The translations under genes were made by a program, and so were the position numbers. A DNA stretch of 64,000 nt from Cyanophora paradoxa CCMP329 (taxonomy: Eukaryota > Plantae > Glaucophyta): NCBI GenBank assembly GCA_004431415.1, contig QPMI01000436.1, positions 496,001 to 560,000 of the forward strand. Reading direction: 5' to 3'. The notes under the pieces are model-generated. The model did not search any database. It worked only from the letters and a program-made list of their open reading frames with translations, and was not told the origin of the DNA. Position 1 is the first letter of the stretch, and each line of letters starts with the position of its first letter. Below, piece by piece: positions 14,481 to 55,500 of this stretch.

Positions 14481-17400
14481 ATGGGTAACAAACGTGCGCC
14501 AGTGCTTCAAATTCTCGAACTGCCGTCGCGCCGGCCGCGGCCGCAGCGCAGCGGCCGGGCTGAACACATACACATCGCAGTCCCCAAGGAGGTTATCAGC
14601 CAATGCGATGGCTACGGCGCCAACGGCCCACAGCCTCTCAACAAGATCGAAGTGGCCTGCCGCGCTGGGACCCCCGAGAAGCAGTGCAAGGTCCGCCGTT
14701 CCGCGCTCAAACGCGCCCCGCGGCCGCATGTGCTAGCTTCGTGCTTGCTGACGCTTCGGTCAGCTCTTCGTGGAGCAGACGTGCACCGATCTCGCCACGC
14801 TCTACAACGGACCGGCCGGCGTTGCGCGCGATTTGATGTGAGCCCGTTCGCGCTTTCTGGCGGTGCCGTGCGCTTGCCGACTACTCGCGGCGCCGCAGCA
14901 CCCGGCTTGAGGCCCAGAACCAAGCTAGAATTGTGCACCCCGCCCCGCCGCTTGCTGCGAACCCCTCCGAGGCTCTGACGCTGTACCCCGCCGCCGATGG
15001 CAGAGAATCGAGTACACCCCGAACGACAAGAACGTCACGTACCCCAGGGGAGAGGCGTCGTACTATGATCCCAAACTGAAGGCGATGGTCCAGTACCCCC
15101 CAAACACGATCCCGGTCCTGTGAGTGCCTGCGCATGCCTCTCCTGCCCTGGGCCGGGGCCGGCGTCGACGTCCAGCTGCGGCGCTGACTAAGGGGTCGCT
15201 TCCGGTCCGCAGCTACAACCCTGCCGCCACGCAGAACGCGGTCGATGGGGACCGCGACCCATACGTCGGGCTCGGGCAAGAGGTGCGTACGTACGCTCCG
15301 CGGTTCCGCGGTCCCCGGTCCAGCCCTTTCTCGCTTGTTTTGATCTCGATCCACCGGTACCCCTCCCCGCAGCTCGTGCGCGCGTGGCATCTCGCCAGAG
15401 GTACGCTCCGCTCCCCCCCCCCCCCCCCCCCCCCTCAAGGCCTACGCCTCCGCCGGCGCCGACCCGCAGACGCACGCGCAGGCATGTACCCCGAGAAGGC
15501 GGGTACGGATTTCATCAAGACGTGCATGGTGCTGGGCCAAGGGCCCTACGGCGTCAACATGCCGATCTCGGACCGGCTCATCCGCGCCGAGTTCAACCAG
15601 GCTCCCCGCACCACCTACCGTCCGCCCTTTCTCCGCCCCTGCCGTCCTACGCGGCTGACGACGCCGCTTTGACTTGCAGCGCAATCGGCCCCGAACGGGT
15701 GCAGCGACGCCGCCAAGCTCGCCGACATGCGGGCGCTCTACATGTCCCCCGAGTTCATCGAGGACTGGAACGTCCTTAAGGACGCGATTGCGGGGAAGCC
15801 CCCCGGGACGACCCTGACCGCGGACCGGACCAGCCACTGCACCGGCTACGGCGTTGGTGCGCGTTCGGATCCGCGCTGCTCGTAGCCCCTTCCGAAATCG
15901 AAGAGACTCCGAAGTAATCCGCGCCGCCGCGCCAGGAAATCTGCAGAAGATCGGAGTTCTGTGCAGGGCCGGAATGGACGAGTCGTATTGCGCGGTACGC
16001 CGCCGGTATTCACGAGCTCGCCCCGCTTGCGCGAGCTGATTTCCTTCTTTGGTGATCACCGCAGTCGTTCCAGCGCATGGTACGTCTCGGCCGCGGCCAG
16101 TTTGCTGTGCCGCGGGCCGCTCGAGCTCGCGCCCTCCGCGGCTGGCATTTAACTTCAGCCCGCGACGCGGGCGCGCGCGCGCAGATCTGCAGCGACCTGA
16201 AGACGATCTACGAGGCGCCCAACAACCACGGCCGGACTCTGATGTGAGCCGATCGCGATCGGCCTTCATTTTCTCAGCGAAGAGCTAGAGGCTGATTTTC
16301 GACTTCGAATTCTTGCGGCGCGGCAGCCAGCGACTGGAGGCGCAGCCTAAGAACATCGTGCGCCGCGGGCTAAGCCTCTGACACGCTTCTGACGCGGCGA
16401 GTGCCTCTGACGCCATGTCTCCCGCGACCTGCGCATGCGCGCCCCACAGACTATCGTTCTCAACGACTCCGAGACGAACGAGGCGATCCCGGCACGGAGC
16501 GTGGGCAACACCGCCGGCACCTTCTACGACGCCTTCAGCCGCCAGAACCTGCAGGTCCTATAAGATCTACTCGTAGATCTCGTGGCGTCTTGCAAGACTT
16601 AAAGCTTCTTAAAGACTTAAAGCTTCCTATAAGATCTACTGTGTGGTTTTAACATTAAAATCTCGTGGCGTCTTGCAAGACTTAAAGCTTCCTTCCGGCC
16701 GCACTGCCGCAGTACCCGACGGACGCGATCACGGTCAAGTTCAACCCGACCTCGATGACGACGCCGACCGACGGCGAGCGCCCGCCCTTCATCTCCCTCG
16801 CCCACGAGGTGCGTACGTATACGTCCCGCGCGCGCGCGGTCCGCGGCCATGCGTATTATGGCCAGCCCGGTTCGATCACGCATATATGCTTTGCACGCAT
16901 AGAATACTAGTTCGATCCTAATTACCGCGGGGCGCGCGGTCCACGGCCATGCGTATATATGTATAAGGCCAGCCCGGTCCCGCTCGCTCTTGATCCTCTA
17001 CCCCCGCTCGCCCTCTCCGCAGCTCATGCACGCGTGGCACTGGGCCTATGGTGCGCGCAGCGCGCCTCCCCCCCCCCCCCCCCCCCCCCCCCCCGCCCCG
17101 ACCCGAGGCGCAGGCATGTACCCCCCGAAGGCCGAGGGCGACTCGAGCTTCGTGAAGGAGTGCATGGTGCTGGGCCGGGGGCCCTTCGCCGCGAACATGG
17201 ACGTCTCCGAGCGTCACCTCCGCGCCGACGTCGGCCTCCCCGAGCGCCACTTCCACGGTGCGGTTAATTGTAACGCTGTTGGTTTCAATTCAAATTTTAG
17301 TATCGTTTGTTAATTCCGGTCTGATCGCGGCCGATCTGATAAACAACACAACTGCAATGAGTTTTAACTAGTATCTCCGACTAGATACTACTACCGAGAA

Positions 17401-17960
17401 ACGTGTAGAAAAGGCCGCTGCCTCTGCTCACTTCACATTTTCGCCGCAGGCAAGTCGGTGCCGAAGCCCGACGGCTGCAACGACGTGGCCCTGCTCGCCA
17501 GGATGGCCGCCAGCGGGTGGGCCCCCTGGGCCCCGCCCCCGCCCCCGCCCCCGCCCCAAGTCCGCACCCAGCTGGACGACGACGCGGCCAGCGTCGTGGT
17601 GCCCTACTCGGCGGACCCGGCCGAGGTCGACGTGCGCCCCGCTGTGGCTAATTATAAGATCTCCTATGTGATTTTAATATTAAAATCTCATAGTGTCTTA
17701 TACGACTTTTTCTTTATTCGAGGGCCGAGATCGGCTCGGCTCGGCTCGGCTCTGCTCTGCTGACAGCGCTCGCGCAGGCGGCGGACCTCGCGGATGCCTT
17801 CGGAGGGGACGAGGGCGGCGCCGCGGGCGATTTGATCGAGGGCGCCGCCGCCGGCGCCGCCGAGGACGCGGCGGCGTTCGAGGCCTGCCCCTGCTGCGGG
17901 GCCGCCGCCGGCGCCTGCGCCGTCGGCGGCGGCGAGGCACACGCCGGCCACATGCTCTAG
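14481..17960 (+). CDS. Putative N-myristoylated protein with two tandem M91-like (NleD/HopH1-type) zinc-metallopeptidase domains; first degenerate, second intact
   Basis: Starts MGNK|LPKEVISQCDGYG. Domain 2 reads ITVKFNP...RPPFISLAHE|LMHAWH...VKECMVLG...VSERHLRADVGLPER. Domain 1 reads VLYNP...RDPYVGLGQE|LVRAWH...IKTCMVLG...ISDRLIRAEFNQAPRTTY. Confidence 0.75.
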
Positions 17961-19074
17961 ATCTAGATCCAGGCCCCGGCCGCGATGATCCTGATCTGTG
18001 TTTTAGTTCTATTTCTAGTTCTAGTTCTAGTATTCCTGTGTGTCGTGGTATATCTTACAATTGTGCGCCCGAGCCTCGGAGATCTAGAGCGCTCGGCGGC
18101 TGGCCCAGTGGCCGATTTTGATTGACTGCTGTTCTCTTAGGCTTTCTCATCGAATTTACAGACTTTACTCTCTTCGTGCTTGCTTACTACGTGCATGCAC
18201 ACTGTGACATATGGCGTACATCGATGATCGATGCATCATGGCATATGCACGTCCCGGCCCACGCGTACGTGCACGTCCCGGCGCGCACCACGTCACGGCG
18301 TCACGGCGTTATACTCGAATTCGAAGCCTTGAAAACTAATCACATGACTCTAGATCTAGTGATGGCTTTACATGTAAATGCATTAGCATGGCTCTAGACT
18401 CTGAGAAATTTGAAAGCCCGATACACGGATGGCTAAGTGACTGGACACTACGTATACGTATACATAGACGCACATAAAACTTCGCATACGTATATACTAT
18501 GCATACGATGATACGCCAACGCGCAATGATAAAATAGAAATCGAAAACCTAGATCTAGAGTGCCACGGTGAATATGAAATTAATTATATAAATCTCAAGT
18601 CTGCAAACGATTCCGACACGGGTCATGATGAATTGAAAAGAAAGTTGAAAGAGTCGAGATATATAAAGCCAACTGGCGCATTCAATCTGGAAGGCAGCCG
18701 TGCGCTATAAAAACCATGCATGGTAAATCAAACCAAACTAAAGGATTCCGGAGTCCGGAGCTGGCGAAAGGGACGACGGATGGATGGATCGCCGTGGCCA
18801 GCCGCAGAGCGCGAGCGTGGCGGGTACCGCGGCCGGCTACGTACACGCAGACGGCCCTCAGAGGAGCGGGGGCGGGGGGGGGGGGGGGGGGGGGGGAGGT
18901 GCCGGCCAGCTGCCGCCGGCCCGGGAGGGGGGGGGCGAGGAAGGGGGAGGGCGGCGGCCCTAGGGGAGGGACAGGCTCGAAAGGGCGCGGGGGGTCGCGA
19001 TCGCGATGGGGGCAGCCGAAGGGGCGGCCGAAGCGCCGCCGAAGCGGCGGAGGACGGGGAGGAGGGAGGGCGGC

Positions 19075-22007
19075 CTACTGGCCTGGGCATAGGCCTGCAG
19101 CCGGGGCGGGCGCCGGCGCCGGCCCGGCGTCGAGGCCGCCGAAGCGGCGGAGGACGGGGAGGAGGGCGGCGCGCGTGATGGGCTTCACGACGTGCTCGTC
19201 GAGCCCGGCGGCGAGGGAGGCCTCCCGGTCCGATGGGCTCCCGAACGCCGTGCACGCCACTGGCGGGCCGGGCTAAGGGACCGGGGGAGGAGGGGGGTAC
19301 GGGGCGCACCGAGGGGGGTGCGGGGCATCCCGAGCTCGTCCTCCATCTGCCGCAGGCGCTGCGCCATCGCCAGGCCGTCGCACCGTGGCTGGCGGGGAGG
19401 GGTGCGGGGTCAGGAAGCAGGGTGGGGGTGGGAGACCGCGGGGGGGGGGGGGGGGGGTACAAGTCACCATGGCGATGTCGGAGAGGACGAGGTCGAAGGG
19501 GGTACGGGCGCCGGGGCCGGGGTACCGGGTCCGGGGCGCAGCATCTCCAGCGCCTCCTCGCCGTCTTTTGCCTCTGCCGTCGCGTGGCCCATCCGCCGCA
19601 GCAGCGCCGTCAGCACCCGCCGGTTCATCTGAGTTCGAAGAGGGGGGGAGAAGCGGATTAGGGGTAGGGAAGGGGAAAGGGGGGTACGGGCGAACCTCGA
19701 CGTCGTCGACGACAAGGATGCGGAGGGGTGTACAGCCGCGGGCGGTTCCGGAGGGGTAGCGCCGTCGAGGGAATCGAGGGAGGCCGGGGCGGCGATGGCG
19801 AGGGGGGTAGGACGTTCCTCCGCCGGGCGGCGCCGGCGCCGACGCCGGCGCTCCGTCCCGAGCGGGGGGAGCTGGTCGACGAGGAGGGGGCACGGGGGGC
19901 CAGGGGGCAGAGGTTGGAAAAGGACGGGGAGGGTCCGCAGGCGCCGGCGGCCGGGGGCGAGGGGGGCCGGACCGAGGCGCTGCGCATGCGGGCCCCGGCC
20001 CCGGGCCCGCCCGCGGGGAGGGTTTCCAGCTCGGTGCCTGTACCCCCCTCGGGCGCGAGCTCCGCAAGCAGCGCCGCCTTGCGGATCGGCTTCGTCAGGA
20101 CCTGCGAACGACGCTCAGAAAGGAACGGAAAGGAGAGGAAAGGAAAGGAGAAAGGGGAGGAGCCACGTGGGCCGCGTGGCCATAGGCCACGTGGGCCACA
20201 TGGACCTTGTCCGATCCATGCCGGAGCGAAGGAAAGGAAAGGAAAGTAAAGGAAAGGAAAGGAAAGTAAAGGAAAGGAAAGGAAAGGAAAGGAAAGGAAA
20301 GGAAAGGAAAGGAAATGTAAAAGAAAAGGACCTTGTCCATGCCGGAGCGGAGGCAGGCCTCGAGCTCCTCTGAGCCAGCGTGGCCCGTGAGGGCGACGAT
20401 GCGGCAGGGGGCGAGGCCCCGCGCCGCCTCCAGCGCCCGGATCCGCTCCGTCGCCTCGCACCCGCTCAGCACCGGCCTGCCGGCCGGCCGCGGGATCATC
20501 TAGCCGTCAGCGAGATGTATAGCTAAATCTAGAGGAAAGAAGGGGGCCTAGGTCGCTGCAAATCGAACCCAGTCTTATCGGATATATATCCAAACGAGGC
20601 AGTTCTAGATCTAGATAAATTTTATCGCTCGGCTGCACATGGCCATGGAGCAGTCCATGAAGGGGCAGAGGCGCCTGTTTCTAAAGTCTAACTTAATTAG
20701 GTTAAGCTTAGACTAAGCAAGTTAAGCTTAGACTAAGCTTAGTCTAAGCTCGGGTCCAAGGTCTTTCTTTGGCCCTCTGAGGCGCACATGGAGCAGTCCA
20801 TGAAGGCGGCCGAGTAGGCGGCCCGCCCCGCCGGCGTCGCCCCCGCCCGCCCCGCGAACAGCGCCACCGCCTGCGGGGGGAGGGGGGAGGGTACGTGAGA
20901 CGGGGGGGGTGGGGGCGCAGGGAGGGCGGGGCGAGGCCCGGCGGCCGGGGCAGGGCGAGCGGAGAGATTTTGGTAGCCTAGCCGAGATCGAGGGAGGGAC
21001 AGGGACAGGGGGTGGGTGGGGGAGAGGGGAGGGGGGGGGGGGGGGGGTAGGGTGCGGGGCGGGACGGGGCGGGGCGGGGCGGGCCTTGGCGCCGTCGGTG
21101 GCGACGTCGCAGGGGTACCCGGCGCCGCGCAGCATCGCCGACAGGATCCGCCGGTTCACCTGAGGGGGTGGGCGGGGGAGGAGAAGTGAGCGAGTGAGGC
21201 AGACGCGAGGGAGGGAGGGAGGGAGGGGCGGAGACTTCGATTCGATCCGACTCGGATCTCAAGCGAATACAAAGCTAAGGGAGCTGACGCCCTCCGGACT
21301 CGGCGCACCCCCTCGCCCTCGCCCCGTCCAAACAAACCCAACCTTAATATCCTAATCTCGATTTAGATTTAGATCGTAAAAGGAATGCTAAGAATTAAGA
21401 CTACGTACGCCCCCCCGGCCCTGTCCCGTCCCGTCCCGTCCCGTCCCGTCCCGGCGCACGCACCTCGTCGTCCTCAGCGATGAGGACGCGTGGCCCGCCA
21501 GCCTCCTCGGACCCCCCGGCCGCGGCCGAGGCGGGGGGCGAGGTGGGCTGGACGCCCCACGAGTCGGCGCGGGCGCCGACGCCCACGGCCGAGAGGGAGA
21601 GGGCCGAGGCGGGGGGCGAGGGCGGGAAGGAGGAGGAGGAGGAGAAGGCGGGGGGGCCCGGGCCCGGGGAGCCGGGCGGGGCGGCGCGGAAGGGCCACGA
21701 GAAGAAGAAGGTCGAGCCGCGCCCCACCTGCGATGTCGATCGCGTGTAAGCGCTAGCTCGAAGGCTCGATGGATGCGTGAAGCTCAACGCCCGTGTAACT
21801 ATGCAACTATAGTGCTCTAAACGCTGAAACTATGTAACTTTATAACTATAACTATATGTAACTATATTAACTAAGGAAGCCCGGCCTGCTCGGGGCTGCG
21901 TGCAGCTGGAGAGGGTGCTGGGGAGGGCGGGGGCGGGGATCGGACCTCGGACTCGCAGCCGATCTCGCCGCCGGCCGCGTTGACGATCTCCTTCGAAATC
22001 GCGAGTC
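19075..22007 (-). pseudogene. Duplicated 3' fragment of the hybrid histidine kinase (end of HATPase plus two receiver domains), no start or promoter
   Basis: Copy of the exons LAISKEIV...VGRGSTFFF...REC1...REC2...GLCPGQ*. The upstream side abuts the duplication junction. Confidence 0.75.
20229..20315. repeat. (GGAAA)n microsatellite in an intron; second copy at ~24388-24474
   Basis: Pentamer array visible directly in the sequence. Confidence 0.95.
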
Positions 22008-23227
22008 CTGCCGGGTAGAGGAAGGGAGCGGGTATGAGGATTCCTGCCGGGGCGGGGGCGGGGCCGGGGCGCCTGCGCCGTCGGCGGCGGCGAGGCACAC
22101 GCCGGCCACATGCTCTAGATCTAGATCCAGGCCCCGGCCGCGATGATCCTGATCTGTGTTTTAGTTCTATTTCTAGTTCTAGTTCTAGTATTCCTGTGTG
22201 TCGTGGTATATCTTACAATTGTGCGCCCGAGCCTCGGAGATCTAGAGCGCTCGGCGGCTGGCCCAGTGGCCGATTTTGATTGACTGCTGTTCTCTTAGGC
22301 TTTCTCATCGAATTTACAGACTTTACTCTCTTCGTGCTTGCTTACTACGTGCATGCACACTGTGACATATGGCGTACATCGATGATCGATGCATCATGGC
22401 ATATGCACGTCCCGGCCCACGCGTACGTGCACGTCCCGGCGCGCACCACGTCACGGCGTCACGGCGTTATACTCGAATTCGAAGCCTTGAAAACTAATCA
22501 CATGACTCTAGATCTAGTGATGGCTTTACATGTAAATGCATTAGCATGGCTCTAGACTCTGAGAAATTTGAAAGCCCGATACACGGATGGCTAAGTGACT
22601 GGACACTACGTATACGTATACATAGACGCACATAAAACTTCGCATACGTATATACTATGCATACGATGATACGCCAACGCGCAATGATAAAATAGAAATC
22701 GAAAACCTAGATCTAGAGTGCCACGGTGAATATGAAATTAATTATATAAATCTCAAGTCTGCAAACGATTCCGACACGGGTCATGATGAATTGAAAAGAA
22801 AGTTGAAAGAGTCGAGATATATAAAGCCAACTGGCGCATTCAATCTGGAAGGCAGCCGTGCGCTATAAAAACCATGCATGGTAAATCAAACCAAACTAAA
22901 GGATTCCGGAGTCCGGAGCTGGCGAAAGGGACGACGGATGGATGGATCGCCGTGGCCAGCCGCAGAGCGCGAGCGTGGCGGGTACCGCGGCCGGCTACGT
23001 ACACGCAGACGGCCCTCAGAGGAGCGGGGGCGGGGGGGGGGGGGGGGGGGGGGGGAGGTGCCGGCCAGCTGCCGCCGGCCGGGAGGGGGGGGGCGAGGAA
23101 GGGGAGGGCGGCGGCCCTAGGGAGGACAGGCTCGAAAGGGCGCGGGGGGTCGCGATCGCGATGGGGGCAGCCGAAGGGCGGCCGAAGCGCCGCCGAAGCG
23201 GCGGAGGACGGGAGGAGGGAGGGCGGC

Positions 23228-26200
23228 CTACTGGCCTGGGCATAGGCCTGCAGCCGGGGCGGGCGCCGGCGCCGGCCCGGCGTCGAGGCCGCCGAAGCGG
23301 CGGAGGACGGGGAGGAGGGCGGCGCGCGTGATGGGCTTCACGACGTGCTCGTCGAGCCCGGCGGCGAGGGAGGCCTCCCGGTCCGATGGGCTCCCGAACG
23401 CCGTGCACGCCACTGGCGGGCCGGGCTAAGGGACCGGGGGAGGAGGGGGGTACGGGGCGCACCGAGGGGGGTGCGGGGCATCCCGAGCTCGTCCTCCATC
23501 TGCCGCAGGCGCTGCGCCATCGCCAGGCCGTCGCACCGTGGCTGGCGGGGAGGGGTGCGGGGTCAGGAAGCAGGGGTGGGGGGTGGGAGACCGCGGGGGG
23601 GGGGGGGGGGGTACAAGTCACCATGGCGATGTCGGAGAGGACGAGGTCGAAGGGGGTACGGGCGCCGGGGCCGGGGGTACCGGGTCCGGGGCGCAGCATC
23701 TCCAGCGCCTCCTCGCCGTCTTTTGCCTCTGCCGTCGCGTGGCCCATCCGCCGCAGCAGCGCCGTCAGCACCCGCCGGTTCATCTGAGTTCGAAGAGGGG
23801 GGGGAGAAGCGGATTAGGGGTAGGGGAAGGGGAAAGGGGGGTACGGGCGAACCTCGACGTCGTCGACGACAAGGATGCGGAGGGGTGTACAGCCGCGGGC
23901 GGTTCCGGAGGGGGTAGCGCCGTCGAGGGAATCGAGGGAGGCCGGGGCGGCGATGGCGAGGGGGGGTAGGACGTTCCTCCGCCGGGCGGCGCCGGCGCCG
24001 ACGCCGGCGCTCCGTCCCGAGCGGGGGGAGCTGGTCGACGAGGAGGGGGCACGGGGGGCCAGGGGGCAGAGGTTGGAAAAGGACGGGGAGGGTCCGCAGG
24101 CGCCGGCGGCCGGGGGCGAGGGGGGCCGGACCGAGGCGCTGCGCATGCGGGCCCCGGCCCCGGGCCCGCCCGCGGGGAGGGTTTCCAGCTCGGTGCCTGT
24201 ACCCCCCTCGGGCGCGAGCTCCGCAAGCAGCGCCGCCTTGCGGATCGGCTTCGTCAGGACCTGCGAACGACGCTCAGAAAGGAACGGAAAGGAGAGGAAA
24301 GGAAAGGAGAAAGGGGAGGAGCCACGTGGGCCGCGTGGCCATAGGCCACGTGGGCCACATGGACCTTGTCCGATCCATGCCGGAGCGAAGGAAAGGAAAG
24401 GAAAGTAAAGGAAAGGAAAGGAAAGTAAAGGAAAGGAAAGGAAAGGAAAGGAAAGGAAAGGAAAGGAAAGGAAATGTAAAAGAAAAGGACCTTGTCCATG
24501 CCGGAGCGGAGGCAGGCCTCGAGCTCCTCTGAGCCAGCGTGGCCCGTGAGGGCGACGATGCGGCAGGGGGCGAGGCCCCGCGCCGCCTCCAGCGCCCGGA
24601 TCCGCTCCGTCGCCTCGCACCCGCTCAGCACCGGCCTGCCGGCCGGCCGCGGGATCATCTAGCCGTCAGCGAGATGTATAGCTAAATCTAGAGGAAAGAA
24701 GGGGGCCTAGGTCGCTGCAAATCGAACCCAGTCTTATCGGATATATATCCAAACGAGGCAGTTCTAGATCTAGATAAATTTTATCGCTCGGCTGCACATG
24801 GCCATGGAGCAGTCCATGAAGGGGCAGAGGCGCCTGTTTCTAAAGTCTAACTTAATTAGGTTAAGCTTAGACTAAGCAAGTTAAGCTTAGACTAAGCTTA
24901 GTCTAAGCTCGGGTCCAAGGTCTTTCTTTGGCCCTCTGAGGCGCACATGGAGCAGTCCATGAAGGCGGCCGAGTAGGCGGCCCGCCCCGCCGGCGTCGCC
25001 CCCGCCCGCCCCGCGAACAGCGCCACCGCCTGCGGGGGGAGGGGGGAGGGTACGTGAGACGGGGGGGGTGGGGGCGCAGGGAGGGCGGGGCGAGGCCCGG
25101 CGGCCGGGGCAGGGCGAGCGGAGAGATTTTGGTAGCCTAGCCGAGATCGAGGGAGGGACAGGGACAGGGGTGGGTGGGGAGAGGGGGGGGGGGGGGGGGG
25201 GGTAGGGTGCGGGGCGGGACGGGGCGGGGCGGGGCGGGCCTTGGCGCCGTCGGTGGCGACGTCGCAGGGGTACCCGGCGCCGCGCAGCATCGCCGACAGG
25301 ATCCGCCGGTTCACCTGAGGGGGTGGGCGGGGGAGGAGAAGTGAGCGAGTGAGGCAGACGCGAGGGAGGGAGGGAGGGAGGGGCGGAGACTTCGATTCGA
25401 TCCGACTCGGATCTCAAGCGAATACAAAGCTAAGGGAGCCGACGCCCTCCGGACTCGGCGCACCCCCTCGCCCTCGCCCCGTCCAAACAAACCCAACCTT
25501 AATATCCTAATCTCGATTTAGATTTAGATCGTAAAAGGAATGCTAAGAATTAAGACTACGTACGCCCCCCCGGCCCCGTCCCGTCCCGTCCCGTCCCGTC
25601 CCGTCCCGGCGCACGCACCTCGTCGTCCTCAGCGATGAGGACGCGTGGCCCGCCAGCCTCCTCGGACCCCCCGGCCGCGGCCGAGGCGGGGGGCGAGGTG
25701 GGCTGGACGCCCCACGAGTCGGCGCGGGCGCCGACGCCCACGGCCGAGAGGGAGAGGGCCGAGGCGGGGGGCGAGGGCGGGAAGGAGGAGGAGGAGGAGA
25801 AGGCGGGGGGGCCCGGGCCCGGGGAGCCGGGCGGGGCGGCGCGGAAGGGCCACGAGAAGAAGAAGGTCGAGCCGCGCCCCACCTGCGATGTCGATCGCGT
25901 GTAAGCGCTAGCTCGAAGGCTCGATGGATGCGTGAAGCTCAACGCCCGTGTAACTATGCAACTATAGTGCTCTAAACGCTGAAACTATGTAACTTTATAA
26001 CTATAACTATATGTAACTATATTAACTAAGGAAGCCCGGCCTGCTCGGGGCTGCGTGCAGCTGGAGAGGGTGCTGGGGAGGGCGGGGGCGGGGATCGGAC
26101 CTCGGACTCGCAGCCGATCTCGCCGCCGGCCGCGTTGACGATCTCCTTCGAAATCGCGAGTCCTGCCGGGTAGAGGAAGGGAGCGGGTATGAGGATTCCT

Positions 26201-29200
26201 GCCGGGGCGGGGGCGGGGCCGGGGCCGGAGCTAAGAAGGGAAGCTCATAGAGGTGGAGCCGGAGCCGGGGAGCCGGGGCAGAGGGGCCGGGGCGGGGGCG
26301 GGGCAGAGGGGCGGGGCAAAGCTTCTTCTAAGCTTCTGATCTTCTAAGCCTTCAAGCCTTTTAAGCCTTGAAGCGGAGCGCGGACCGAGGCCGTTGCCGC
26401 CCGGGTCGGTGGCCATGTCGGAGTGGGCGCGGAAGAAGGGCGAGAAGAGGCGCGCCACCGACGCCGGCGCGATCCCGGGGCCTGCAGGCCCCGCCGCAGC
26501 CGGCTCAGCACCGCGCACCCAATCTAAGCTCTAAGGCTATTTTGGGCGGCTCTAAGCTCAGCCGGCTTAAGCTCTCAGCTAAGCGGCTCAGCACTGCAGG
26601 CGCAGCCGGCTCAGCATCGATATCGTGGCACCCGGGCGCTTGGCCCCATAGGGCTTAATCGAGATCCGGTATCGGGTGCGCGCGCGCGCGCGCGCGCGCC
26701 GCGCCCCAGCTGCCTCAGCGCCGCGGCACCCTGATCTAATCTCTAAGGATCTAAGCTTCATCTAACGCAAGCTTCATCTAACGCACCGGAGTCCTCGACC
26801 TCGAAGCGGACGCAGAGGGCGTCCCCTCCGGAGCCGCCGGGGCCCTCGCCGCCCTCCCCCAGCGCCTCCACCGCCTCGGGCGAGAGGGGCACGAGCCCCG
26901 CCCGCACCTGGAGGGGAGGAGGTGAGGAGGAGGGGGGGAGGGGGGGAGGGGAGGGGGGCATTGTTCTAGAGAAACTTCTAGGAGAAGCGAGGGAAGGAGG
27001 ATATGTCGATCTCAAGAGAACAGTCTCAGCGGGGCGGGGCGGGAGGGGGGGAGGGTGCGGGGGGGGGGGGGGGGGGGGGGGGGCGGGGCGTGGGGTGCGG
27101 GGCGCACGCGGATGGCGCCGCTGTTGCTGTACTTGACGGCGTTCGAGAGCAGGTTCAGCACCACTGCGCGGCGCGGCGGGGCGGGGCGGGACGGGCCGGG
27201 GCGGGTTCGGGTCAGAATTTTTAGAACGCTCGTTCGCTTTGTGTATACGTAGCTGCAGGCCACTCGTTCTGGCGAATTTAGATTTCGAATTCGATTTGTC
27301 TGCCTTGTCTCTATCGCACCCTGGCAGAGGCGGTTCGTATTCCGTCTATAGCTTATCGATCTGAATTTAGCTTGTCTATCTAGATCTATAATTGCGATCG
27401 CACCCTGGCAGAGGCGGTCGGGGTCGCCGAGGAGGGCGTCCGGGACCGTCTCCTCGACCGCGAGGGCCACGTCCAGGCCCTTCGCCTCCGCCTGCAGCTG
27501 CACCTGCGGGGGCGGAGGAGGTTGGGATTCACCGAGGGCGAGGACGGGTCGCCTGGAGGATCTAGGGTCTAGATGTCTCGTGGAAGTGATTCGTTCGATA
27601 CGATCTCTCTGGCTCGCGGGGAGGAGGTGGGGAGGCGGGCGCGCGTGATGCGCATGGCCTAGGTTCAAAGGTCCCGAGTCTAGAGGCATCGATCGAAGTC
27701 GGAGAGGGGAAGAGGGCCCGGGGGTACGCGCGCACGATGCGCATGGCGGCGCAGGCGAGGAGGAGGGTGGGGGTGGGGGGAGGTGAAGGGGAGGGGGGGG
27801 GGGAGGTTGAGGGAGAAAGGAGGCGAGAGATAGGGGGTACGCGCGCGCGCACGATGCGCATGGCGGTCCTAGGGTCTCGGGCCTAGGATCTAGAAGGTCT
27901 AGGTCCAGAGTCCTACAAAAGGGGGGAGGAGAGTCCTACAGAGTCGAGGTAGAAAGGAGGGAGAGATAGGGGGAGGGCCGGGGGTACGCGCGCACGATGC
28001 GCATGGCGGTCCTAGGCGCGTGCCATCTAGGATCTAGGGTCGGGGAGGGGGGGGGGGGGGGGGGGGGCGGGAGGATCTAGGATCTAGGGTCGGAAAGGAG
28101 GGCCGGGGGTACGCGCGCGCGCACGATGCGCATGGCGGTGCGGAGGACGGCGCGGAGGGAGAGGGGCACGCGCCGCAGCTGCATCGCACCCACCTCCATA
28201 CGCTGGAACTCGAGCACCTGGGGGGGTAGGGGAGGAGGAAGTTAAGGGGGGGTAGGGGGTAGGGGGTGGGGATAGTGGGAGAGCACCGCGTCGATAAGGA
28301 AGCGGAGGTGGTTGCCCGACTGCGCCGCCGCCTCGACGTACCTGCGGGGGTACAGAGTCAGAGTCGGGTTCGGGTCGAGAAGGGGGCTACAGGCGCACCC
28401 GGCGGCGTCGGGGGGTAGGGCGCAGTCGGCGGCGAGCTCGAGCATGCCGAGCACCCCGTTCAGCGGCGTCCGCACTGCCGGGCGATAAATATTGGAAATT
28501 GCGGGGACGTGAAGAGCGAGAAGAGGTGGCGGCTGCGGCGCCGGCCGCCGTGGCCCGACTCTAGCTATAGCGTGGGGGCGAGGCGGGGCGGGCGCGGGGC
28601 GGGGCGGATCGAACGCTAAGACTTTGGGACGCTCGGACTTTGAGGCGCGGTGGGGCGGGACTCTTGAGGATTCAAGCTTAAGGTCTCAAGCGTAATGGTT
28701 TAAAAGGGAGGAGGGGGACGGGACGGGACGGGGCGGGGCGGGGCGGGGCGGGCCCCGCTCTCGTACTTGAGGCACCGCGGCCCGACTCTACTACTAGAGT
28801 CGAGATCTAAACTCTATCTTAAGGGCGGGGCGGGGCGGGGCGCACTCTCGTGGGACATGGAGGCGAGGAATTTCTTCGTGCTCTCCGCCTGCAGTGCGAA
28901 ACGAACGTGCCGCGGCGTCGGTTGGATCGGGGTACGCGTGGGGTGGGGCCGGCGCCTCGGGGGACGGCGGCGTCGGTTGGATCGGGGTACGCGTGGGGTG
29001 GGGCCGGCGCCTCGGGGGACGGCAGCGGGCCGGCAGCGGATCTTCATTCGAGCTAGGAAATCTGGAGATCTAGATCATCGTTTAGATGGCCTTGGCCTGG
29101 GTGGGTGGGTGGGGGTGGGGGGGGGGGGGGAGGGGAGGGGGGAGGCGGAGGCCGCGGCGGTGCGGGGCGGGGCGGGGGCGGAGGACGGGGCGGGCGCACG

Positions 29201-30833
29201 CGGATCTTCATCTCGATGCGGGCCTCCGTGTCCACGCTCACCAGCTCCTGGAACCTGCCGGGGGGAAGGAGGAGGGGGGTGTCAGGGGCGGGAGGGGGGC
29301 CCTGGGCGGAGACCGGAGGGCTATAGCCATAGCTACGCGCGAGGGCGCACGCGGCGAAGCGGGCGCGGACGTCGGACAGGAGCGGCTTAAATAGGCTTAA
29401 AAAGACTTGGATCTAGATCTAGTAAAGGCTTGAAAGATTCAGCTTAAGATAGGGGAGGATCTGGATCTAGGATGTGGATTTTGGATGAATTAATTATAAA
29501 GCGCACGTGGCGAAGCGGGCGCGGACGTCGGAGAGGAGCGGCTCGAGGCGCGCCAGCTCCGAGAGGCCCGAGCCCCGCGCCCAGGGCGGAGGAGGGGAGG
29601 CGGCGGGGGGCGAGGCGGAGGCAGTGGAAGGGGGGGCGATGGCGGCGGCGGCGGCGGAGGCGGCCGCGGCGCTCAGCTTGCGGGACGAGATGCGCCGCAC
29701 CGCCTGCCGGGTGCGTCAGCTTAGAAAGCGCGTTCAGCTCCGATCCGAGGCGCTAGATGAAGGACTAGCGAGCTCAACACTGAGCTCAAGCTTATGGGAC
29801 AGCAAGCTATGGTTAATTTGGGGGTCGCGGGCGCACTGCGAGGCCGCGCGAGGCGGAGCGGGCCGGCTCCTCGGGGGCCTCAACCTTAGCTTAATTCTTG
29901 GCTTCTTAAGCTTTAGCTCTGGCTCTGGCTTCTTATCTCTGTATCTAGCTTCTCACGCTTGATCTCAAGCATTCGTTTGGGGGGCGCACTGCGAGGCCGC
30001 GGGAGGCGGAGCGGGCGGGCTCCTCGGGCGCCCCCTCGTTCAGGGGCGAAGCCGGGGCCGGGGCCGGGGCCGGGGCGGCGAGGGAAGCCTTGCGGGAGGC
30101 GGGAGGCGAGGCGGGGGCCGCCGGCTCGATCCGCGCGTGCTGGCCGAGGGCGAGGGTCATGCAAGAGAAAGAGAGAAGATTCAAGGTTGATAGTTGATAA
30201 GAGATAGATAGAGAGATCATAGAAGCTGGTAAGTTACATGAAGCTCGCTGTCTCATGATTACCTGGGCGAGGGCGAGGGTCATGTGGGAGAGGGTCTGGA
30301 CGATGACCTCCAGCCCGCTGTACAGCTGCGCCAGCGGCCGCGTGATCCGCAGCCCCACCAGCCTGCGGTGGGGGGGTTAGAGGGGCACAGCGCAAGGGGT
30401 AGCGTGTTAACGTTGGACAAGCTCTTAAAGTTCAAAGTTGAAGCTCAAGCTTTATTTCAAGCTTAAGCTTAAGCCAAATCAAAGCTTAAGCTTAAGCTCA
30501 AGCTTAAACGATCACAGCTTAAGCTTGAGCTCAATTATAAGCTTGAGTCAAGCCCGAATTGAAGTTGGAGTCAAGCAGGAGGACGCACACGGCGGCGGCG
30601 AGGCAGAAGACGAGCCAGAGTGAGTTGGCGATCGAGACGATCACGAAGGAGCGGTACACGTCCGCCAGCACGCTGTCCTGCGCCCCCGGACCGCCCCGGC
30701 GTCAGATCGAGACGGCCGGTGCGAGACCTGGATCTGGACCTAGATGTAGCTAGATTTAGCGCCTCGGGCCCCGGCGTCAGGGGTGCTACCTAGCCATAGG
30801 CCTAGATCCGGACCTAGATCCGGACCTAGATCT

Positions 30834-30918
<85 letters not shown>

Positions 30919-33900
30919 CAGCCCCCGGCCCGCCCCGGCCCGCCCCGGCGTCAGGGGGACCACCTAGGCCTTCTAAGCGCCGGAGCCAGCGTCTAAGAGG
31001 GGATATAACTCGGCAGCCCCCTCTCCGCTATGCATTCCTAGATCTCTATGATGTGCCGTCCTTCGCGCGCCGGCCTTGGTCTCGATGGATGTCGCAGTGG
31101 GCCCCATGATCCGCCCGGAACGGGGGCGCAGAGGGTGCGCTCGGGGGCCGGGGGCCGGGACTAGATTAGATCCCTATATACTAAAGAAAGAAGGCGGGGC
31201 GGGCCGGGGCCGCGTGGGCCACCGGCGCGGCGGCGGCGACGTACGTACTTGCTAGGCGCCCGCCCGCTAGATCTAATCCTATATATATCCTATCCTAGAT
31301 CCATCGGGGCGTCTGATCTAATGGGGGCCGGGGCTACCTGCACAGCGGCGACGATCTAGATCTCGATCTAGATCTAGATCCAGGTCCAGGGCCTTCTCGA
31401 GAGGGCTCGATCTAGATCTAGAGCCGGGTCCTTCGCCTTATAAGTTAGGCACCTGCGCGGCGGCGACGTAGATGCGCCAGGAGAGGTTGGGCGGGGCGGC
31501 GAAGGTCGCCCGCGCGAAGTAGTAGGAACGGCCCCCCGACGAAAAGGTCTCGCCCTCCCCGCTGTATGGGAAAAGATGTGTGAGGAAAAGAAAGGAAAAG
31601 CTTAAGGGAACGGATGGGATGTATGGGAGAGGATGAGTGAGGCAAGGGGAGGGAAGGAAAAGCTTGAGGGAGAACGGGGGGCACCTGGAGCCAGCAGCGG
31701 CGCGGGCCTCGGCGAAGCGAACGAGGTCGCGGATGAGCTGCGGCGGGCGGGCGGGCGGACGGTAACATTATATTCCATCAGTTGAAGGCACCGAAGCATC
31801 GGTTCGGCTCGGTCGCTTCGGTTCGGTTCGGTTCGGCGTCGTCCTGCGCACCTGGGAGGGGTTCTCTGCCGCACGCAGCGGGCTCTCCTTGGAGTCCATA
31901 ACGTGTTCTGGCCGCCCCGTCGACGCCCCGATCATCTGATCGCGGCGGGGAATTAGATCGCGGGGGAAGGGGGGAGGGGAGGGGGAGCTCGAGGGGGAGG
32001 GGATGGGGAAGGGCGGTGCGGGGCGGGCTGCGCTAGAGGGTGCTACATCCCAGCTACGGCGGGAGATCTAGGATTGGATCGCGGGGGGACGGGGGGTGGG
32101 GGAGGGTGAAGGGGAAGGGCGTGGGGGGGGAGAGGAGGGGCGGGTTGCGTTAGGTCTAGAGCGTGCTAGATCCCAGCTACTTGTACTTAAGCTTTTAGGA
32201 CGTGGGTGAAGCGGCGTGCACGTGTGTTGAGGTGGGGTGGGAGTGGGGTTGGGGGGTGGGGGGGGGGGAGGAAAGGGGGGTACGGACGGTGCCGGTGGCG
32301 CCGTCGACGACGACGGTGAGGCCCTCCAGATCGCGGTACCCCGCCAGGGATTCCACCCACACCTGCGCCCGGGGAGCGTGATCACGAGTTCGAATTTCGG
32401 AGGCCCGGGCAGGATCCACGCTAGCGCTGGCTGAGCCCAATATTTGTTGTACCCCGGAGAGCCCGGAGAGTGGGAGGAGCTATTTATAGGGCGGCCGGCG
32501 CCGCACCCGCTGGAGGTACTTCGAGAGGGCGGCGAGGGGTACGGAGACCGCCGAGGCCCCCGTCACGGGCCCGGGGTACGACGGAGGGCCCGCCGGGGCC
32601 GGCGGCTCAGGCATGGCCGGCATGGTGGCGGGGATGGGTAGGCCCGCCGCTCGCGGCGGGCCCCGCAGCCGGTACGTCGTCGCGTACTGCGGGCGGGGGC
32701 TCAGGGGGGGGAAGAAGGCGGAGGGGGGTACGCGCGCGCCTGGAGGACGAGGCGCTCCAAGGGGTCGAGGGTGCGGAAGCCGGTGGCGGTCAGCTGCCAG
32801 GCCGCCCCGGCCCCGGACTCCAGGGCGTCCTGTGACAAGAATAGCCTTGATTCAGAGCCGAGAATTCAAATTTCGGAAGGGGGGGGGGGGGTAAAGGACC
32901 TTGACGACTCCCCAGGCGACGCCAAGGGACGAGTCGGGACGCTCGGACATGAGCGCGGCGGGCTGGCCCCGGGCCGTCCCGTAGAAGTTCTCGGTCCAGG
33001 TCCCGTTGCCCACGAAGACGACGGGCGAGCCGCAGGGCGGAGCGCCCGCCTCGGCGCTCCGGTTGCAGCCGTACGCGCCCAGCGTCCCCAGCCGCGTGTC
33101 CGCCCGCACCGGCGCGCCCTCTGCGCGGAACTTGAGCTTGAAAACTCGAGACCGAGATCGGAATCGGGCGAGCGCGGGCACCGTCGTAGGAGAAGCGGAC
33201 GTAGTGAGCGAAGACTGTACAGCGAAGAAGATGAATCTCAAGTCAGAAACCCAGCAAGAAGCTCAAGCTTAAGCCAGGGGTCTAGCGGGCCGGTCCCGCC
33301 CGCCTACCCTCGGGAAAAGCTTAAGCTTAAGCTTAAGCTTAAGAAGCTTAACTAGAAGGTCTAGCGGGCCGGCCCCGCGCGCCCGCCTACCCTCGGGGTG
33401 CACGGCCATAGTGATGGCCAGCGCCTCCAGCACAGCCCGCCACCGGCCCCGGTCCAGAATTCCCTGCGAGCGAGCGAGCGGTCGAGATTTTAGGTGAAAG
33501 GGCAGTGGAGAGCACTAGGCGTGCCCGCGGAGGCGGGCGGTGTCCCCTCTAGCCGTCCCGGAGATCGCGCAGCGAGCGAGCGGTCCGGCCGGTGAGTTGG
33601 GGTGGGCGGGTTCGAGGCCGGAATCTCGGTCTTGAGCGGCCGGGGCCAAGGCGGGGCCGGGCGCCGGGGACGAGGCCGCGCGCACGAACCGACTCCATGT
33701 CGCTCTTCGTGCGCTCGGCGGCGCGCACGGCCGAGTCCACGAACCGCTGCGGGCGAAGTCGAAGTCTTAAGCGAAGCTTAAGCTTAAGTGAGGCCAGCGG
33801 GGATCAGGAGCGGCCGCACCGAGACAGCGCCCACCGCGCCGTCCCTCACTTGCCCGATCGTCGTCCCTGCGCATGCCGCCCCGGCAAGCTGCAGCTTAGA

Positions 33901-45369: not shown

Positions 45370-46576
45370 ATGACCTATGCGCGCTTCATCGAGCAAGCCA
45401 TGTCGGATCCTGATAGGCGTCAACAGGCTGAGAAGCTCTCCGTGGTGTGGCTTGCGCCTCGCATAATTGTTCGTCGCTTTAAGTGGGCATACAGGCCATC
45501 GCGCAAGCAGGCGAGTTCGGTCAGAGTCAAGTGCTGGAGGCTGTAAAAGAGCTGAAGAACGGTCAGAGCGATCTGGACAAGAAACTTTGGGTAAGGGTTC
45601 TGTGTCTGGTTGCCGAGAAGAGTCTCTTACCCTGCGGCCAGGCAATCATCATCACTCTGGTCGGATTGTGAGCGTATTCCGCTTTCCGATCTTCACCGTT
45701 TGAGTTCCTAATGCCACGTACAGGCTGCTGAGCACCATCCTGTCACGCAACGGTGCGATTCGTGTTTGTATCTCGAATGCATGCTGTGTGTACCTGAACC
45801 ACAATTCCATCAGGGAACGCTTCGCCCCCTGGCCCCAGCACGGCCCCGCCCGCGGCCGCGGCCTCCCCGCCCGCGGCCTCCTATCCCGCGGCATCCCCGC
45901 CCGCGGCCTCCTATCCCGCGGCCTCTCCGCCCGCGGCCTCCTATCCCGTGGCATCCCCGCCCGCGGCCTCCTATCCCGCGGCCTCTCCGCCCGCGGCCTC
46001 CTATCCCGTGGCATCCCCGCCCGCGGCCTCCTATCCCGCGGCCTCTCCGCCCGCGGCCTCCTATCCCGTGGCATCCCCGCCCGCGGCCTCCTATCCCGCG
46101 GCCTCTCCGCCCGCGGCCTCCTATCCCGTGGCATCCCCGCCCGCGGCCTCCTATCCCGCGGCCTCTCCGCCCGCGGCCTCCTATCCCGTGGCATCCCCGC
46201 CCGCGGCCTCCTATCCCGCGGCCTCTCCGCCCGCGGCCTCCTATCCCGTGGCATCCCCGCCCGCGGCCTCCTATCCGCGGCCTCTCCGCCCGCGGCCTCC
46301 TATCCCGTGGCATCCCCGCCCGCGGCCTCCTATCCCGCGGCCTCTCCGCCCGCGGCCTCCTATCCCGTGGCATCCCCGCCCGCGGCCTCCTATCCCGCGG
46401 CCTCTCCGCCCGCGGCCTCCTATCCCGTGGCATCCCCGCCCGCGGCCTCCTATCCCGCGGCCTCTCCGCCCGCGGCCTCCTATCCCGTGGCATCCCCGCC
46501 CGCGGCCTCCTATCCCGCGGCCTCTCCGTCCGCGGCCGCCGCTACCCCGCCCGCTCAGGCCTCGCCCGTACAGTAG
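45370..46576 (+). CDS. Coiled-coil + single TM protein with an (ASPPAASYP[A/V])n tail; one apparent 1-nt deletion in the repeat
   Basis: Spliced: [25 protein letters not shown]|AIAQAG...[15 protein letters not shown]|AIIITLVGL|LLSTILSRN|[24 protein letters not shown]...ASPVQ*. Further upstream exons from ~44946 may be UTR or coding. Confidence 0.55.
45870..46529 (+). repeat. Minisatellite of ~22 x 30-bp units alternating A/B (60-bp higher-order repeat)
   Basis: cccgcggcctcctatcccgcggcctctccg alternates with cccgcggcctcctatcccgtggcatccccg. Confidence 0.97.
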
Positions 46577-52049: not shown

Positions 52050-55000
52050 ATGGCCTCGGCGGACCCGCCGCGGGGCCTGGGCATCCTCATCCTGATCTTC
52101 CGGTTGTGCGTGTTCGTTTTCTACCACAGCGTCTCAATCGTGGGCCAGTCCCTCGTCCCGAAGGTCCGACGATCTTTGCCGTCGAAACCGAGCCTCCCGG
52201 CTCACCGCCGCCGCAGAAAGGGGCCGTGATCGTTACCGCGAACCATGGCAACTCGCTTATGGACGCCCAGATGGTCCTCACCTCGTGCCCCAGGAGGGTG
52301 CGCATGCGGCTCTCTAGATGGCGATCCGATGCGCCGGTTCAGGACCGGCGGTCTCACGGCCGGAGCAGGTCCGTCTGACCGCAAAGGATACGCTCTGGAA
52401 GAGCACCTGGTGGCGGTGAGCGCGATTCCCGGCCGATCGTCCACGCGCGCGCGCTCAGCCGCGCGCGCAACGCAGCTTCTGGCTGTCGAACACCGGCACC
52501 ATCCCGATCAAGCGCGCTATGGACCACGCCGGCGAGAAAGTCGTGCGTGCTGTCGCCTTTCCTTTCCTCTGGCCAGGGCTCCTCGAACGCCTCGCGCAGG
52601 ACAACACGTCCAGCTTTGACGCGCTCTACAAGGTGCTCGACAACGGGGGGTGCATAGGCCTCTTCCCCGAGGGAATCTCGCGCTACCGCCCGTGCGCTCG
52701 CTCGCCCCCGCCCCCGCCCCGCCGCGCGCTCGGCGACCCCCGCGCGCCTCGCTCGCTTAGCTAAGCCGCCGCGCCGGAAGGTGGCTCTCCCCTCTCAAGC
52801 CCGGCGTGGCACGCATCGGTGCGGGGCGCAACCGGCTCGCGCTCGCGCTCCCGCTCCTCTCTTGCCGCTAAGGCGCCCCGCGCGCAGCCCTCGAGTCGGT
52901 CGCGCGGAACAAGGATCCCGATTTCAGGTGCGGCCGCCCCTCCGCCCCGCGCCGCGCTACGCCTTAGTGGGCCCAGGCTCTTAGCATAGCTTTAAGCTCG
53001 AGGTCTAGGTTCTAAGACGGTCAAGGCTTTTCAGCTTCAGTATTCTAGCTTCCTCCAACGTTCTGAGTCGCCCCCCGCCCCCGCAGCTGCGCGATCCAGC
53101 CGTGCGGCCTTAGCTCTGAGACGCCCTAAGTAGCCTAAACTCTTAGCGCCTCTTTAAGCTTCTTGAAGTAAATTATTCGAATTCTGAGGCCGACTAGGCT
53201 TTTCAGCTTTAGCATTCTAGGTTCTGAGACGCCCCCCGCCCCCGCCCCCGCAGCTGCGCGATCCAGCCGTGCGGCCTTAGCTCTGAGACGCCCTAAGTAG
53301 CCTAAGCTCTTAGCGCCGCTTTAAGCTTCTTGAAGTAAATTATTCGAATTCTGAGGCCGTCTAGGCTTTTCAGCTTTAGCATTCTAGGTTCTGAGACGCC
53401 CCCCGCCCCCGCCCCCGCCCCCGCAGCTGCGCGATCCAGCCGTGCGGGCTCACGTACATGCACCGCGACAAATTCCGCTCTGACGTCGTCTGCCGCTTCG
53501 GCGAGGCGCGCGCGATCCCGTACCCCCCACTTCCCCCCCCCCGGCCTCACCGGTAACCCCCCCCCCGCAGCCCATCGTCGTCGACCGGAAGACCTACCCC
53601 AAGGTGCCCTACCCCACCCCCGCCGCCCCTCCTCCTCCCTCCCTCCGCCCCGCTCTAAGCCTCCCTCCCTCCCTCCCCCCCCCCCCCCCCCCCCCCCTTC
53701 CCCCACCGCGCAGCTGGACCTAGCCGTGCCTAGCCACCTAGCCACCCAGCCGCCTAGCTCAGTGCTGTAGTTGTAGTGCCAGATCCCGATCCCAGTGCCG
53801 CCGCCTAGAAGCCGTCTAGAAGCCGCCTAGAAGCCGCCGGAGGGTGAAGGGGGCGCTGTTCTCTTCCCGGGGACCTCACCTGACCTGACCTCATCGCCTC
53901 TGGCAGCGCATCGACCGCCTGGGGGTCACCCAGGAGCTCGTCCGCCGCCGGGTGCGCTCAGATCAGATCAGATCAGATCAGATGGAATCTGATCTGATGG
54001 AATCTGATCTGATCTGATCTGAATTGATCCTGCAGCCGTCGGTGATCGCGTGCGCGTGGCGCGTGCTGCTGCGCGCCCTCTCCGCCGCCTTCCTGCTCTC
54101 CCTGGCCCTCCCGGGTACGACAAAAATCCCGGCGTAACCTATATTTAGCTCACCTGGCTCCCGCGCTCGCCCCCCGCAGGCATCGTCATCCTCTCGCCGC
54201 TCTTCGTCGCGAGCCGCTACGTAGAGGGGTACTGCATGCGCCGCGCCGGCGGCGCCGAGATGAACCAGGACGAGGCGCGCCGTACCCCCCCCCTCTACCC
54301 CCCTCTACTTAGCCCTCCGGTCAGGTCGCCCAGTTCAAGATCTCGGCGGCGGTCGTCATCCTCCCCACGCTCCTCTCGCTCTCAACTACTGCCTCCTGGG
54401 CCTTCCTCGGGGCTCGGGCGACCGCCGCCCTCGCGGCCGGCCTCCCGCTCCTCCTCTGGCTCACCCTACGCTGGCTCGAGGTGCGTACCCCCCCTTAAAG
54501 ATCCGGATCGGATCCGGATCCGGATCCGGATCCCTGGCCATGGGCCGCGCGCGCCCGCCCCCCTTCCTTCCTCTTCCTCCTCTCCCTCCCCTGCCCCTTC
54601 TGAAAGCGGTACCCCCCCTTCCTCCCTCCCCCCTCCCCCAGGACGGGACGCACTCGGCGCGGACGATGCTCCTCTACTGGCGCTGGATGACCCTGGCCCC
54701 CTCCGTGAAGCGCGAGGTCCGATCTCCGCACACATATATGAAGCAGCTCGAAGATCTAGAGCTCGCGGACGTGTAACCTTTTAATTTAGCACAACTTCGT
54801 CCCATAGAGCGGCACGGGTTCCGATAGGAATAACAGCGGCCACGTAGCAACTAGGATCTGATGAAAGGTCCGAATGATTTATAGATGCGAGCGGAGGAGA
54901 GGGGCTCTAGTAAGACCTAAGGAGGGCTCTTTTGCATAGCCATAAGCTTTGCTTGAGAAGCTTCACTTAGTATATATATATATACGTTGATGTGCCTCCG

Positions 55001-55500
55001 GCGCGCGCGCGCGCAGGTGCGGTCGGAGTGCGCGCCATAAGCTTCACTCAATATTTACATTAATACGCCTCCTTATAACCATACGCTTAAGCTGAAGCTT
55101 AAGAAGAAGTCTCGCTTGACGTTTATTTACATTAATGCGCGCAGGTGCGGGCAGAGTGTGCGGCCGTCGAGGGCCTGGTGGCCCGCGTCGCGGAGGAGTT
55201 CGGCGTGCCCGACTACAAGGACGCCCGCCCCGCCTCCGTCATCGACTACTTCAAGTGAGTGATTATTTATATAAGACGCATGCCTCGATGTAAAGGACGC
55301 TCCTCAAGACGGATATAAGATGCTTTCTTTATTTCATCTCCTCCTCCTCCTTCATCTTCTCCTGACCTGCCCTTCTTTTCCCCCCTCCTCGCGGCAGCCC
55401 CGTGCGGCGGCGCAAGAAGTCTGTGTCCGAGCTTCTGAAGCTGCGGCCGGCGCTCAACGAGATGTACAACGAGGACCAGTGCCCCCGCAAGGACGAGTAG
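52050..55500 (+). CDS. Glycerol-3-phosphate/DHAP O-acyltransferase (Sct1/Gpt2-like, PlsC superfamily)
   Basis: GAVIVTANHGNSLMD (HxxxxD), LTAKDTLW, GTIPIKR, IGLFPEGIS, LSPLKPGVARI, PCGLTYMHRDKFRSDV..FGE|PI, followed by C-terminal TM helices. Confidence 0.88.
53030..53450 (+). repeat. Three imperfect ~170-bp tandem copies spanning a 3' splice site and exon start
   Basis: ggcttttcagctt...ttctgag.cgccccccgcccccgcag|ctgcgcgatccagccgtgcgg occurs three times; only the last continues in the coding frame. Confidence 0.92.

Follow-up and report, generated by a model that had tools for sequence, protein, structure and literature searches.

The window analysed here, a stretch of 64,000 nucleotides (nt) from contig QPMI01000436.1 of the glaucophyte Cyanophora paradoxa CCMP329, contains a hybrid histidine kinase gene, encoding a sensor kinase, in which many introns carry copies of the exon end that precedes them. 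The window is gene-dense, with a GC content of about 65% and short introns bounded by GT or GC and AG; the published assembly of the species, which is based on long reads, has 67.6% GC and a mean intron length of 86 bp (PMC6704402). The kinase gene model (33746-23229) has about 1210 open codons and canonical junctions, and its product includes HisKA, HATPase-like and two receiver domains, the single-exon Pfam matches (HisKA and Response_reg) being weak and below the curated cut-off. The gene is expressed, as RNA contigs match its exons. Its introns are long, with a median of 222 nt compared to 65 to 119 nt in the nine other modelled genes of the window. A homologue search with exon 33118-32900 returned four weak matches, and no orthologous locus was found with it.

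Intron numbering starts at exon 33746-33690. The boundary of exon 2 was set at the in-frame choice with better codon usage, the probe-match test described below having used an earlier boundary, and micro-exons that the gene finder had made out of the copies were deleted from the model by hand. The 3' third of the gene, including introns 26 and 27, is repeated in a tandem duplication of about 4.16 kb (17902-22070 and 22060-26228). The differences between its two copies are single-base indels in runs and two T/C changes, and contig depth in one of the DNA runs, X1, is about 200 there, compared to 60 to 95 in the adjoining DNA; the duplication therefore looks real and recent.

Junction copies in the kinase gene

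In nine of the 30 kinase introns (2, 11, 12, 13, 14, 18, 19, 26 and 27; Table 1), the end of the upstream exon is clearly copied, mostly together with the donor site. These copies, or 'echoes', are 15 to 51 nt long, mostly 88 to 100% identical to the junction and sharp-ended, and an unduplicated spacer of 43 to 149 nt lies between copies. As the gene is on the minus strand, each echo is downstream of the working donor. All eight pairs listed in an earlier, sequence-only reading of this DNA were recovered within a few bases of the positions it gave, and intron 11 adds a further one. Past the downstream copy, the sequence usually returns to ordinary C-rich intron, so that in the simplest history spacer and copy would have been inserted near the old donor, the upstream copy remaining exonic. 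Some of the intron 18 copies share spacer letters, which indicates that they arose partly from one another.

Table 1. Positions in the window of the kinase gene, its junction copies and its wholly intronic duplications
Feature	Positions	Strand	Description
Hybrid histidine kinase gene	23229-33746	-	31 modelled exons, 30 introns; 5' end not fixed
Intron 2, junction copy	33279-33397	-	Junction 33397-33358 (-7 to +33), copy 33314-33279, 35/40; spacer 43 nt, 30% GC; exon boundary by codon usage
Intron 9, exon-end copy	31220-31470	-	Weak, decayed copy 31243-31220
Intron 11, exon-end copy	30140-30284	-	Exon end 30284-30263, copy 30161-30140, 21/22
Intron 12, junction copy	29829-30032	-	Junction 30032-29982 (-43 to +8), copy 29879-29829, 48/51; donor intact; spacer 102 nt
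Intron 13, junction copy	29345-29543	-	Junction 29543-29501 (-37 to +6), copy 29387-29345, 41/43; donor intact; spacer 113 nt, 34% GC
Intron 14, junction copy	29025-29216	-	29216-29190, short copy 29051-29025; exact core 12 nt; copy donor lost its G
Intron 18 (621 nt), junction copies	27622-28139	-	Junction 28139-28097; copies 28010-27972, 27867-27833, 27749-27716 and decayed 27661-27622; up to 35/35
Intron 19, junction copy	27313-27418	-	Junction 27418-27397 (-15 to +7), identical copy 27334-27313, 22/22; spacer 62 nt
Intron 26, junction copy	24794-24973	-	Junction 24973-24943, copy 24829-24794 (24973-24946 against 24829-24803: 26/28); 6-nt fold-back insertion in copy; self-repeating 116-nt spacer
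Intron 27, junction copy	24361-24512	-	Junction 24512-24487, copy 24391-24361; insertion of 5 nt in copy; microsatellite spacer (5-nt unit); copy makes an AG-GT site
Intron 6, wholly intronic duplication	32033-32180	-	25 nt, 123 apart
Intron 9, wholly intronic triplication	30693-30967	-	Branch-point region
Intron 15, wholly intronic duplication	28548-28790	-	16 nt, 227 apart
Intron 21, wholly intronic duplication	26495-26616	-	16 nt, 106 apart; DNA contigs identical; RNA: intron removed whole

The exon-end matches exceed chance. The last 25 bases of each exon matched their own intron (P ≤ 0.01, the null being the other introns) in 10 of 30 cases, two of them weak (introns 9 and 30), whereas two sets of control probes placed far from the junction gave 0 of 28 each, and acceptor-side probes 0 of 30. 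The copy count leaves out matches of low complexity in introns 15 and 30. The copies were also looked for in DNA contigs from runs of two studies (2019 and 2024) over 24721-30700. Not a single difference was found across those at 24803, 27313, 27640, 29345, 29831 and 30145; this confirmation holds for these six. In the four-copy intron 18, one X1 contig skips from 27749 to 28010 through a 32-nt shared copy. The skip probably reflects a shortcut of the assembly graph through G-rich DNA, and less probably a shorter allele; a second X1 contig appears to hold one of the skipped copies. Some repeat letters were skipped in read matching for the depth bins, and empty bins were not taken as proof.

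Duplications are not restricted to junctions. A hand count over the 129 modelled introns of ten genes gave about 27 duplications lying wholly within introns, 16 introns being affected, for about 11 donor-side and 2 clear acceptor-side junction copies. Donor-side echoes were found in 9 of 30 kinase introns and in 2 of 17 introns of a second gene, compared to none in the other 82 introns. Within the kinase gene, intron 14 also contains a head-to-tail duplication of about 60 nt adjoining its acceptor (28909-29028), and intron 9 a long TA run (30836-30915).

Several neighbouring genes show related structures. In a GTP-binding protein gene (GTPBP; minus strand), introns of 758 and 718 nt (59999-59242 and 58048-57331) carry several donor echoes; the modelled working donor of the second is GC, and its echoes have GT, making AG-GT sites. 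An acyltransferase-like gene (plus strand, 52928-53426 and 54717-55144) has acceptor-side echoes, with three acceptor copies spaced 167 to 173 nt from one another; a donor follows each of the first two and would produce in-frame micro-exons of 15 nt. In a plus-strand gene with two paralogous halves (introns 16555-16712 and 16809-17022), one intron is 214 nt long with internal duplications and its counterpart (15283-15372) only 90 nt, which is a case of within-gene intron growth without a junction copy.

Donor usage and spacer content

Evidence on splicing came from the contigs of two probable RNA runs, belonging to different studies; rare forms drop out of such contigs, and splicing intermediates are invisible in them. 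At intron 18, the contigs join 28125 directly to 27503, and from there they fit exons of 100, 56, 121, 96, 62, 264, 75 and 83 nt exactly, so that no echo is included in this stretch. The upstream donor is thus the one used where introns 18 and 19 are bridged, and intron 26 is read up to its donor. RNA contigs also join exons 30677-30589 and 30362-30263, and RNA depth in the bin of intron 13 fits the real exon alone.

The echo donors themselves are often well preserved: in 7 of 11 copies, the donor score is close to that of the real site, and in three the donor is either broken or far weaker. Use of the echo donors would bring in a stop in four introns, shift the frame in one and add 28 and 42 codons, in frame and free of stops, in two, and a design aimed consistently at nonsense-mediated decay (NMD) was rejected on these differing frame effects. 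An AG directly before the inner GT, as expected of recursive splicing, occurs within the kinase gene only in intron 27. The sequence-only reading had proposed that decoy donors drive alternative, recursive or NMD-coupled regulation. We found no evidence for this in RNA contigs that splice at the upstream donor, and the inconsistent frame effects do not favour it either; the copies show no sign of function and are probably neutral.

Intron 11 (30262-30140) is the most instructive of the nine. It is 123 nt long, in frame and stop-free. The filler provides its donor, and a repeat of the last 22 exon bases stands at its 3' end, where the copy supplies the predicted acceptor. Use of the donor is seen in an RNA contig, and the DNA contigs are identical. 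From its sequence, intron 11 looks like a candidate for a newly gained intron.

The spacers were compared as a set of 15, three of them from neighbouring genes. According to the sequence-only reading, the filler is AT-richer, palindromic and supplies stops on both strands. The first property applies to nine spacers, with 30 to 44% GC against 72% in exons; the other six have 56 to 74% GC, one spacer is a 5-nt microsatellite, and four echo introns contain no sense-frame stop. Within the window, no common element or terminal inverted repeats were seen among the 15, the BLAST matches being local repeats or simple motifs, and no source for the inserts was found there. The spacers repeat themselves, however, more than chance predicts: internal 8-mer direct or inverted repeats cover 373 of 1479 nt, compared to 98 in shuffles (maximum of 300 shuffles, 198), those of introns 11 and 19 being little self-repeating. 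They are also twice as palindromic as shuffles, and intergenic DNA is more so (66 six-base palindromes per kb, compared to 34). The palindromes are therefore a general property of non-coding DNA here and not of junctions.

One motif stands out, a 9-mer made of a triplet, its reverse complement and the triplet again, observed 13 times in spacers against 0.5 expected, 82 against 6.5 in long introns and 142 against 3.8 in intergenic DNA. The intergenic figure is 37 times the shuffled level and specific to 3-nt units, and exons have 45 against 12. A fold-back insertion sits inside the copy at 24803, so this process acts after duplication. A tandem array of period 30/60 nt is also present at 45846-46530.

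Origin of the copies

We consider it probable that the echoes are neutral scars of error-prone repair of DNA breaks, by insertion with duplication, which survive since the first donor wins. A repair event would duplicate 15 to 50 bases beside the break and leave 40 to 150 bases of new, partly self-templated filler between the copies, giving an arrangement of the type X, filler, X'. Breaks could fall anywhere, and selection would filter the outcome: exonic events would be lost unless the filler happened to be spliceable, as may be the case for intron 11; events copying the acceptor upstream would mostly be lost as well; those within an intron or covering the donor would survive, as splicing starts from the first donor and removes both filler and copy. 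Palindromes would have been added later, through microsatellite growth, re-duplication of units and the 6-nt fold-back insertions that also fill intergenic DNA. The repair origin, the order of events and their neutrality are inferences, the first of them drawn from sharp-ended, 88 to 100% identical copies around unduplicated spacers, from flanking sequence that is directly repeated to either side of the insert, and from internal repeats above chance. The claim that a recurrent mutational process lengthens these introns is supported, the spacers looking self-templated.

Whether such a process must be directed at junctions was examined by simulation, with uniform breaks and simple survival rules of our choosing, on the window's 74 short introns. 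The simulated proportions of donor, acceptor and intronic events were 0.21, 0.05 and 0.74, near the approximately 0.28, 0.05 and 0.67 observed, so junction targeting is not required. Several points nevertheless weigh against the repair reading. The survival rules are the analyst's assumptions. Copies end at +1 to +9 after the donor in six of nine events, compared to 2.3 expected (P = 0.0099). All donor echoes fall in two of ten genes, a concentration that a uniform process alone leaves unexplained. The junction copies are also longer than the 4- to 17-nt repeats described in Daphnia.

The clustering of copy ends is the main argument for mutagenesis focused on junctions, with breaks or template switches favoured just downstream of the 5' splice site and exon ends copied above chance, whether linked to transcription, linked to the spliceosome, or primed on the self-complementary donor motif. 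The imbalance between 11 donor-side and 2 clear acceptor-side introns, and the fact that a single donor was hit repeatedly in intron 18 and likewise in two GTPBP introns, point the same way. However, the overall class mix fits uniform breaks, and the sample is small; moreover, later insertions may erase the intronic part of a match while selection freezes its exonic part. The sequence-only reading had placed the focus at G-quadruplex (G4)-prone G-runs, and this was not supported: G4 motifs are present in 7 of 13 echo introns compared to 14 of 24 long introns without echo. Of its broader claim, a process focused on exon-intron borders, the clustering of copy ends gives some support, but wholly intronic duplications are about twice as common as junction copies and the uniform model performs similarly. 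Junction-focused mutagenesis seems unlikely to us. In a more specific form, a hotspot just downstream of 5' splice sites, tied to transcription or to the assembly of the spliceosome, would repeatedly place copies of exon ends in introns and occasionally make a new intron. We find this form, by a shade, more doubtful still; if it were true, splicing itself would steer where intron DNA grows.

Alternatively, the junction could have been duplicated head to tail, and the spacer grown later by many small fold-back insertions and microsatellite slips. The excess of triplet 9-mers in spacers and intergenic DNA, the fold-back insertion within the copy at 24803 and the pure microsatellite spacer would all be in keeping with this. 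Against it, several copies are 94 to 100% identical around spacers of 60 to 113 nt, which would require at least ten insertions in a single place; self-repeats are few in the spacers of introns 11 and 19, and no adjacent junction copies free of spacer were seen. We regard this history as rather improbable.

A role for the echoes as alternative or recursive donors, cassette micro-exons or NMD switches is very unlikely. The near-real scores of most echo donors, the upstream AG that several possess, which makes an in-frame micro-exon possible, and the AG-GT site of intron 27 could suggest one, and low-level use could still occur, as contigs lose rare forms and recursive splicing yields an identical mRNA. 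On the other hand, RNA contig coordinates leave no space for echoes in introns 18, 19 and 21 to 25, the micro-exon reading is contradicted by RNA at intron 18, and both the three broken or weakened donors and the differing effects on frame speak against function.

In several introns, direct repeats enclose about 100 nt of AT-richer, foreign-looking sequence and recall small mobile elements, the copies then being target-site duplications. Introner elements, which are insertions creating or sitting in introns with a target duplication, form families of similar sequences; the kinase spacers, in contrast, are unrelated to each other. A shared element was rejected, since there is no spacer family within the window, no terminal repeat and no constant duplication length (15 to 51 nt), and we give this origin very little credence. 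Finally, an assembly or polishing artefact, which the X1 skip and homopolymer noise in the window might have suggested, can be dismissed for practical purposes, as the six covered copies are present letter for letter in contigs of two studies and the copies bear substitutions of their own.

Known systems and significance

The sequence-only reading named no earlier description of this architecture, without a firm claim of novelty; precedents exist (PMC4202315, PMC1557585). In Daphnia pulex, new introns and intron growth have been attributed to repair of staggered double-strand breaks, with repeats of 4 to 17 nt (Li et al. 2014, PMC4202315; reviewed in PMC3443670). The kinase introns share with these internal repeats from further rounds, passive intron lengthening and, on the far side of the insert, direct repetition of the neighbouring exon end; the Daphnia inserts are AT-rich and of unknown origin, as nine of the 15 spacers may be. 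Intron 11 corresponds in form to the single staggered-break class. They differ in the length of the repeats, and in that the usual event makes a present intron longer and copies its donor, instead of giving rise to a new one.

In intron 7 of human F7, a 37-bp head-to-tail minisatellite lies across the exon-intron border, and its downstream identical donors are silent, the most upstream one being used (Borensztajn et al. 2006, PMC1557585). Here too, the repeat unit spans the border, downstream donors are equal or nearly equal in 7 of 11 copies, and the first donor is used where tested. Unlike that minisatellite, our copies are parted by unrelated filler of 43 to 149 nt, and they are found in about a third of the introns of one gene.

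Tandem genomic duplication at proto-splice sites and break repair are both listed among the routes of intron gain (PMC2891723; PMC3443670). As in tandem genomic duplication, the splice site is provided by exonic sequence that was duplicated, and one of the copies turns intronic, but the intron body is new filler, from which the intron 11 donor also comes. In mammalian cells, fill-in at staggered break ends produces small tandem duplications (Schimmel et al. 2021, PMC8355091), a non-theta route by which breaks can acquire short duplications; the abstract of that study describes no long filler between copies.

Break-repair duplication is thus a known route for introns to grow and arise; what sets these introns apart is the length of the repeats, the filler between copies, and their unusual density. 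Our literature search found no paper describing such junction copies in this alga. Intron growth and gain are usually inferred after their traces have vanished, whereas one gene here shows about ten fresh long-repeat footprints and one probable new intron. As DNA runs of the species number at least 16 and several RNA runs exist as well, its genome could test break-repair models of intron evolution, as well as first-donor selection in an organism with short introns.

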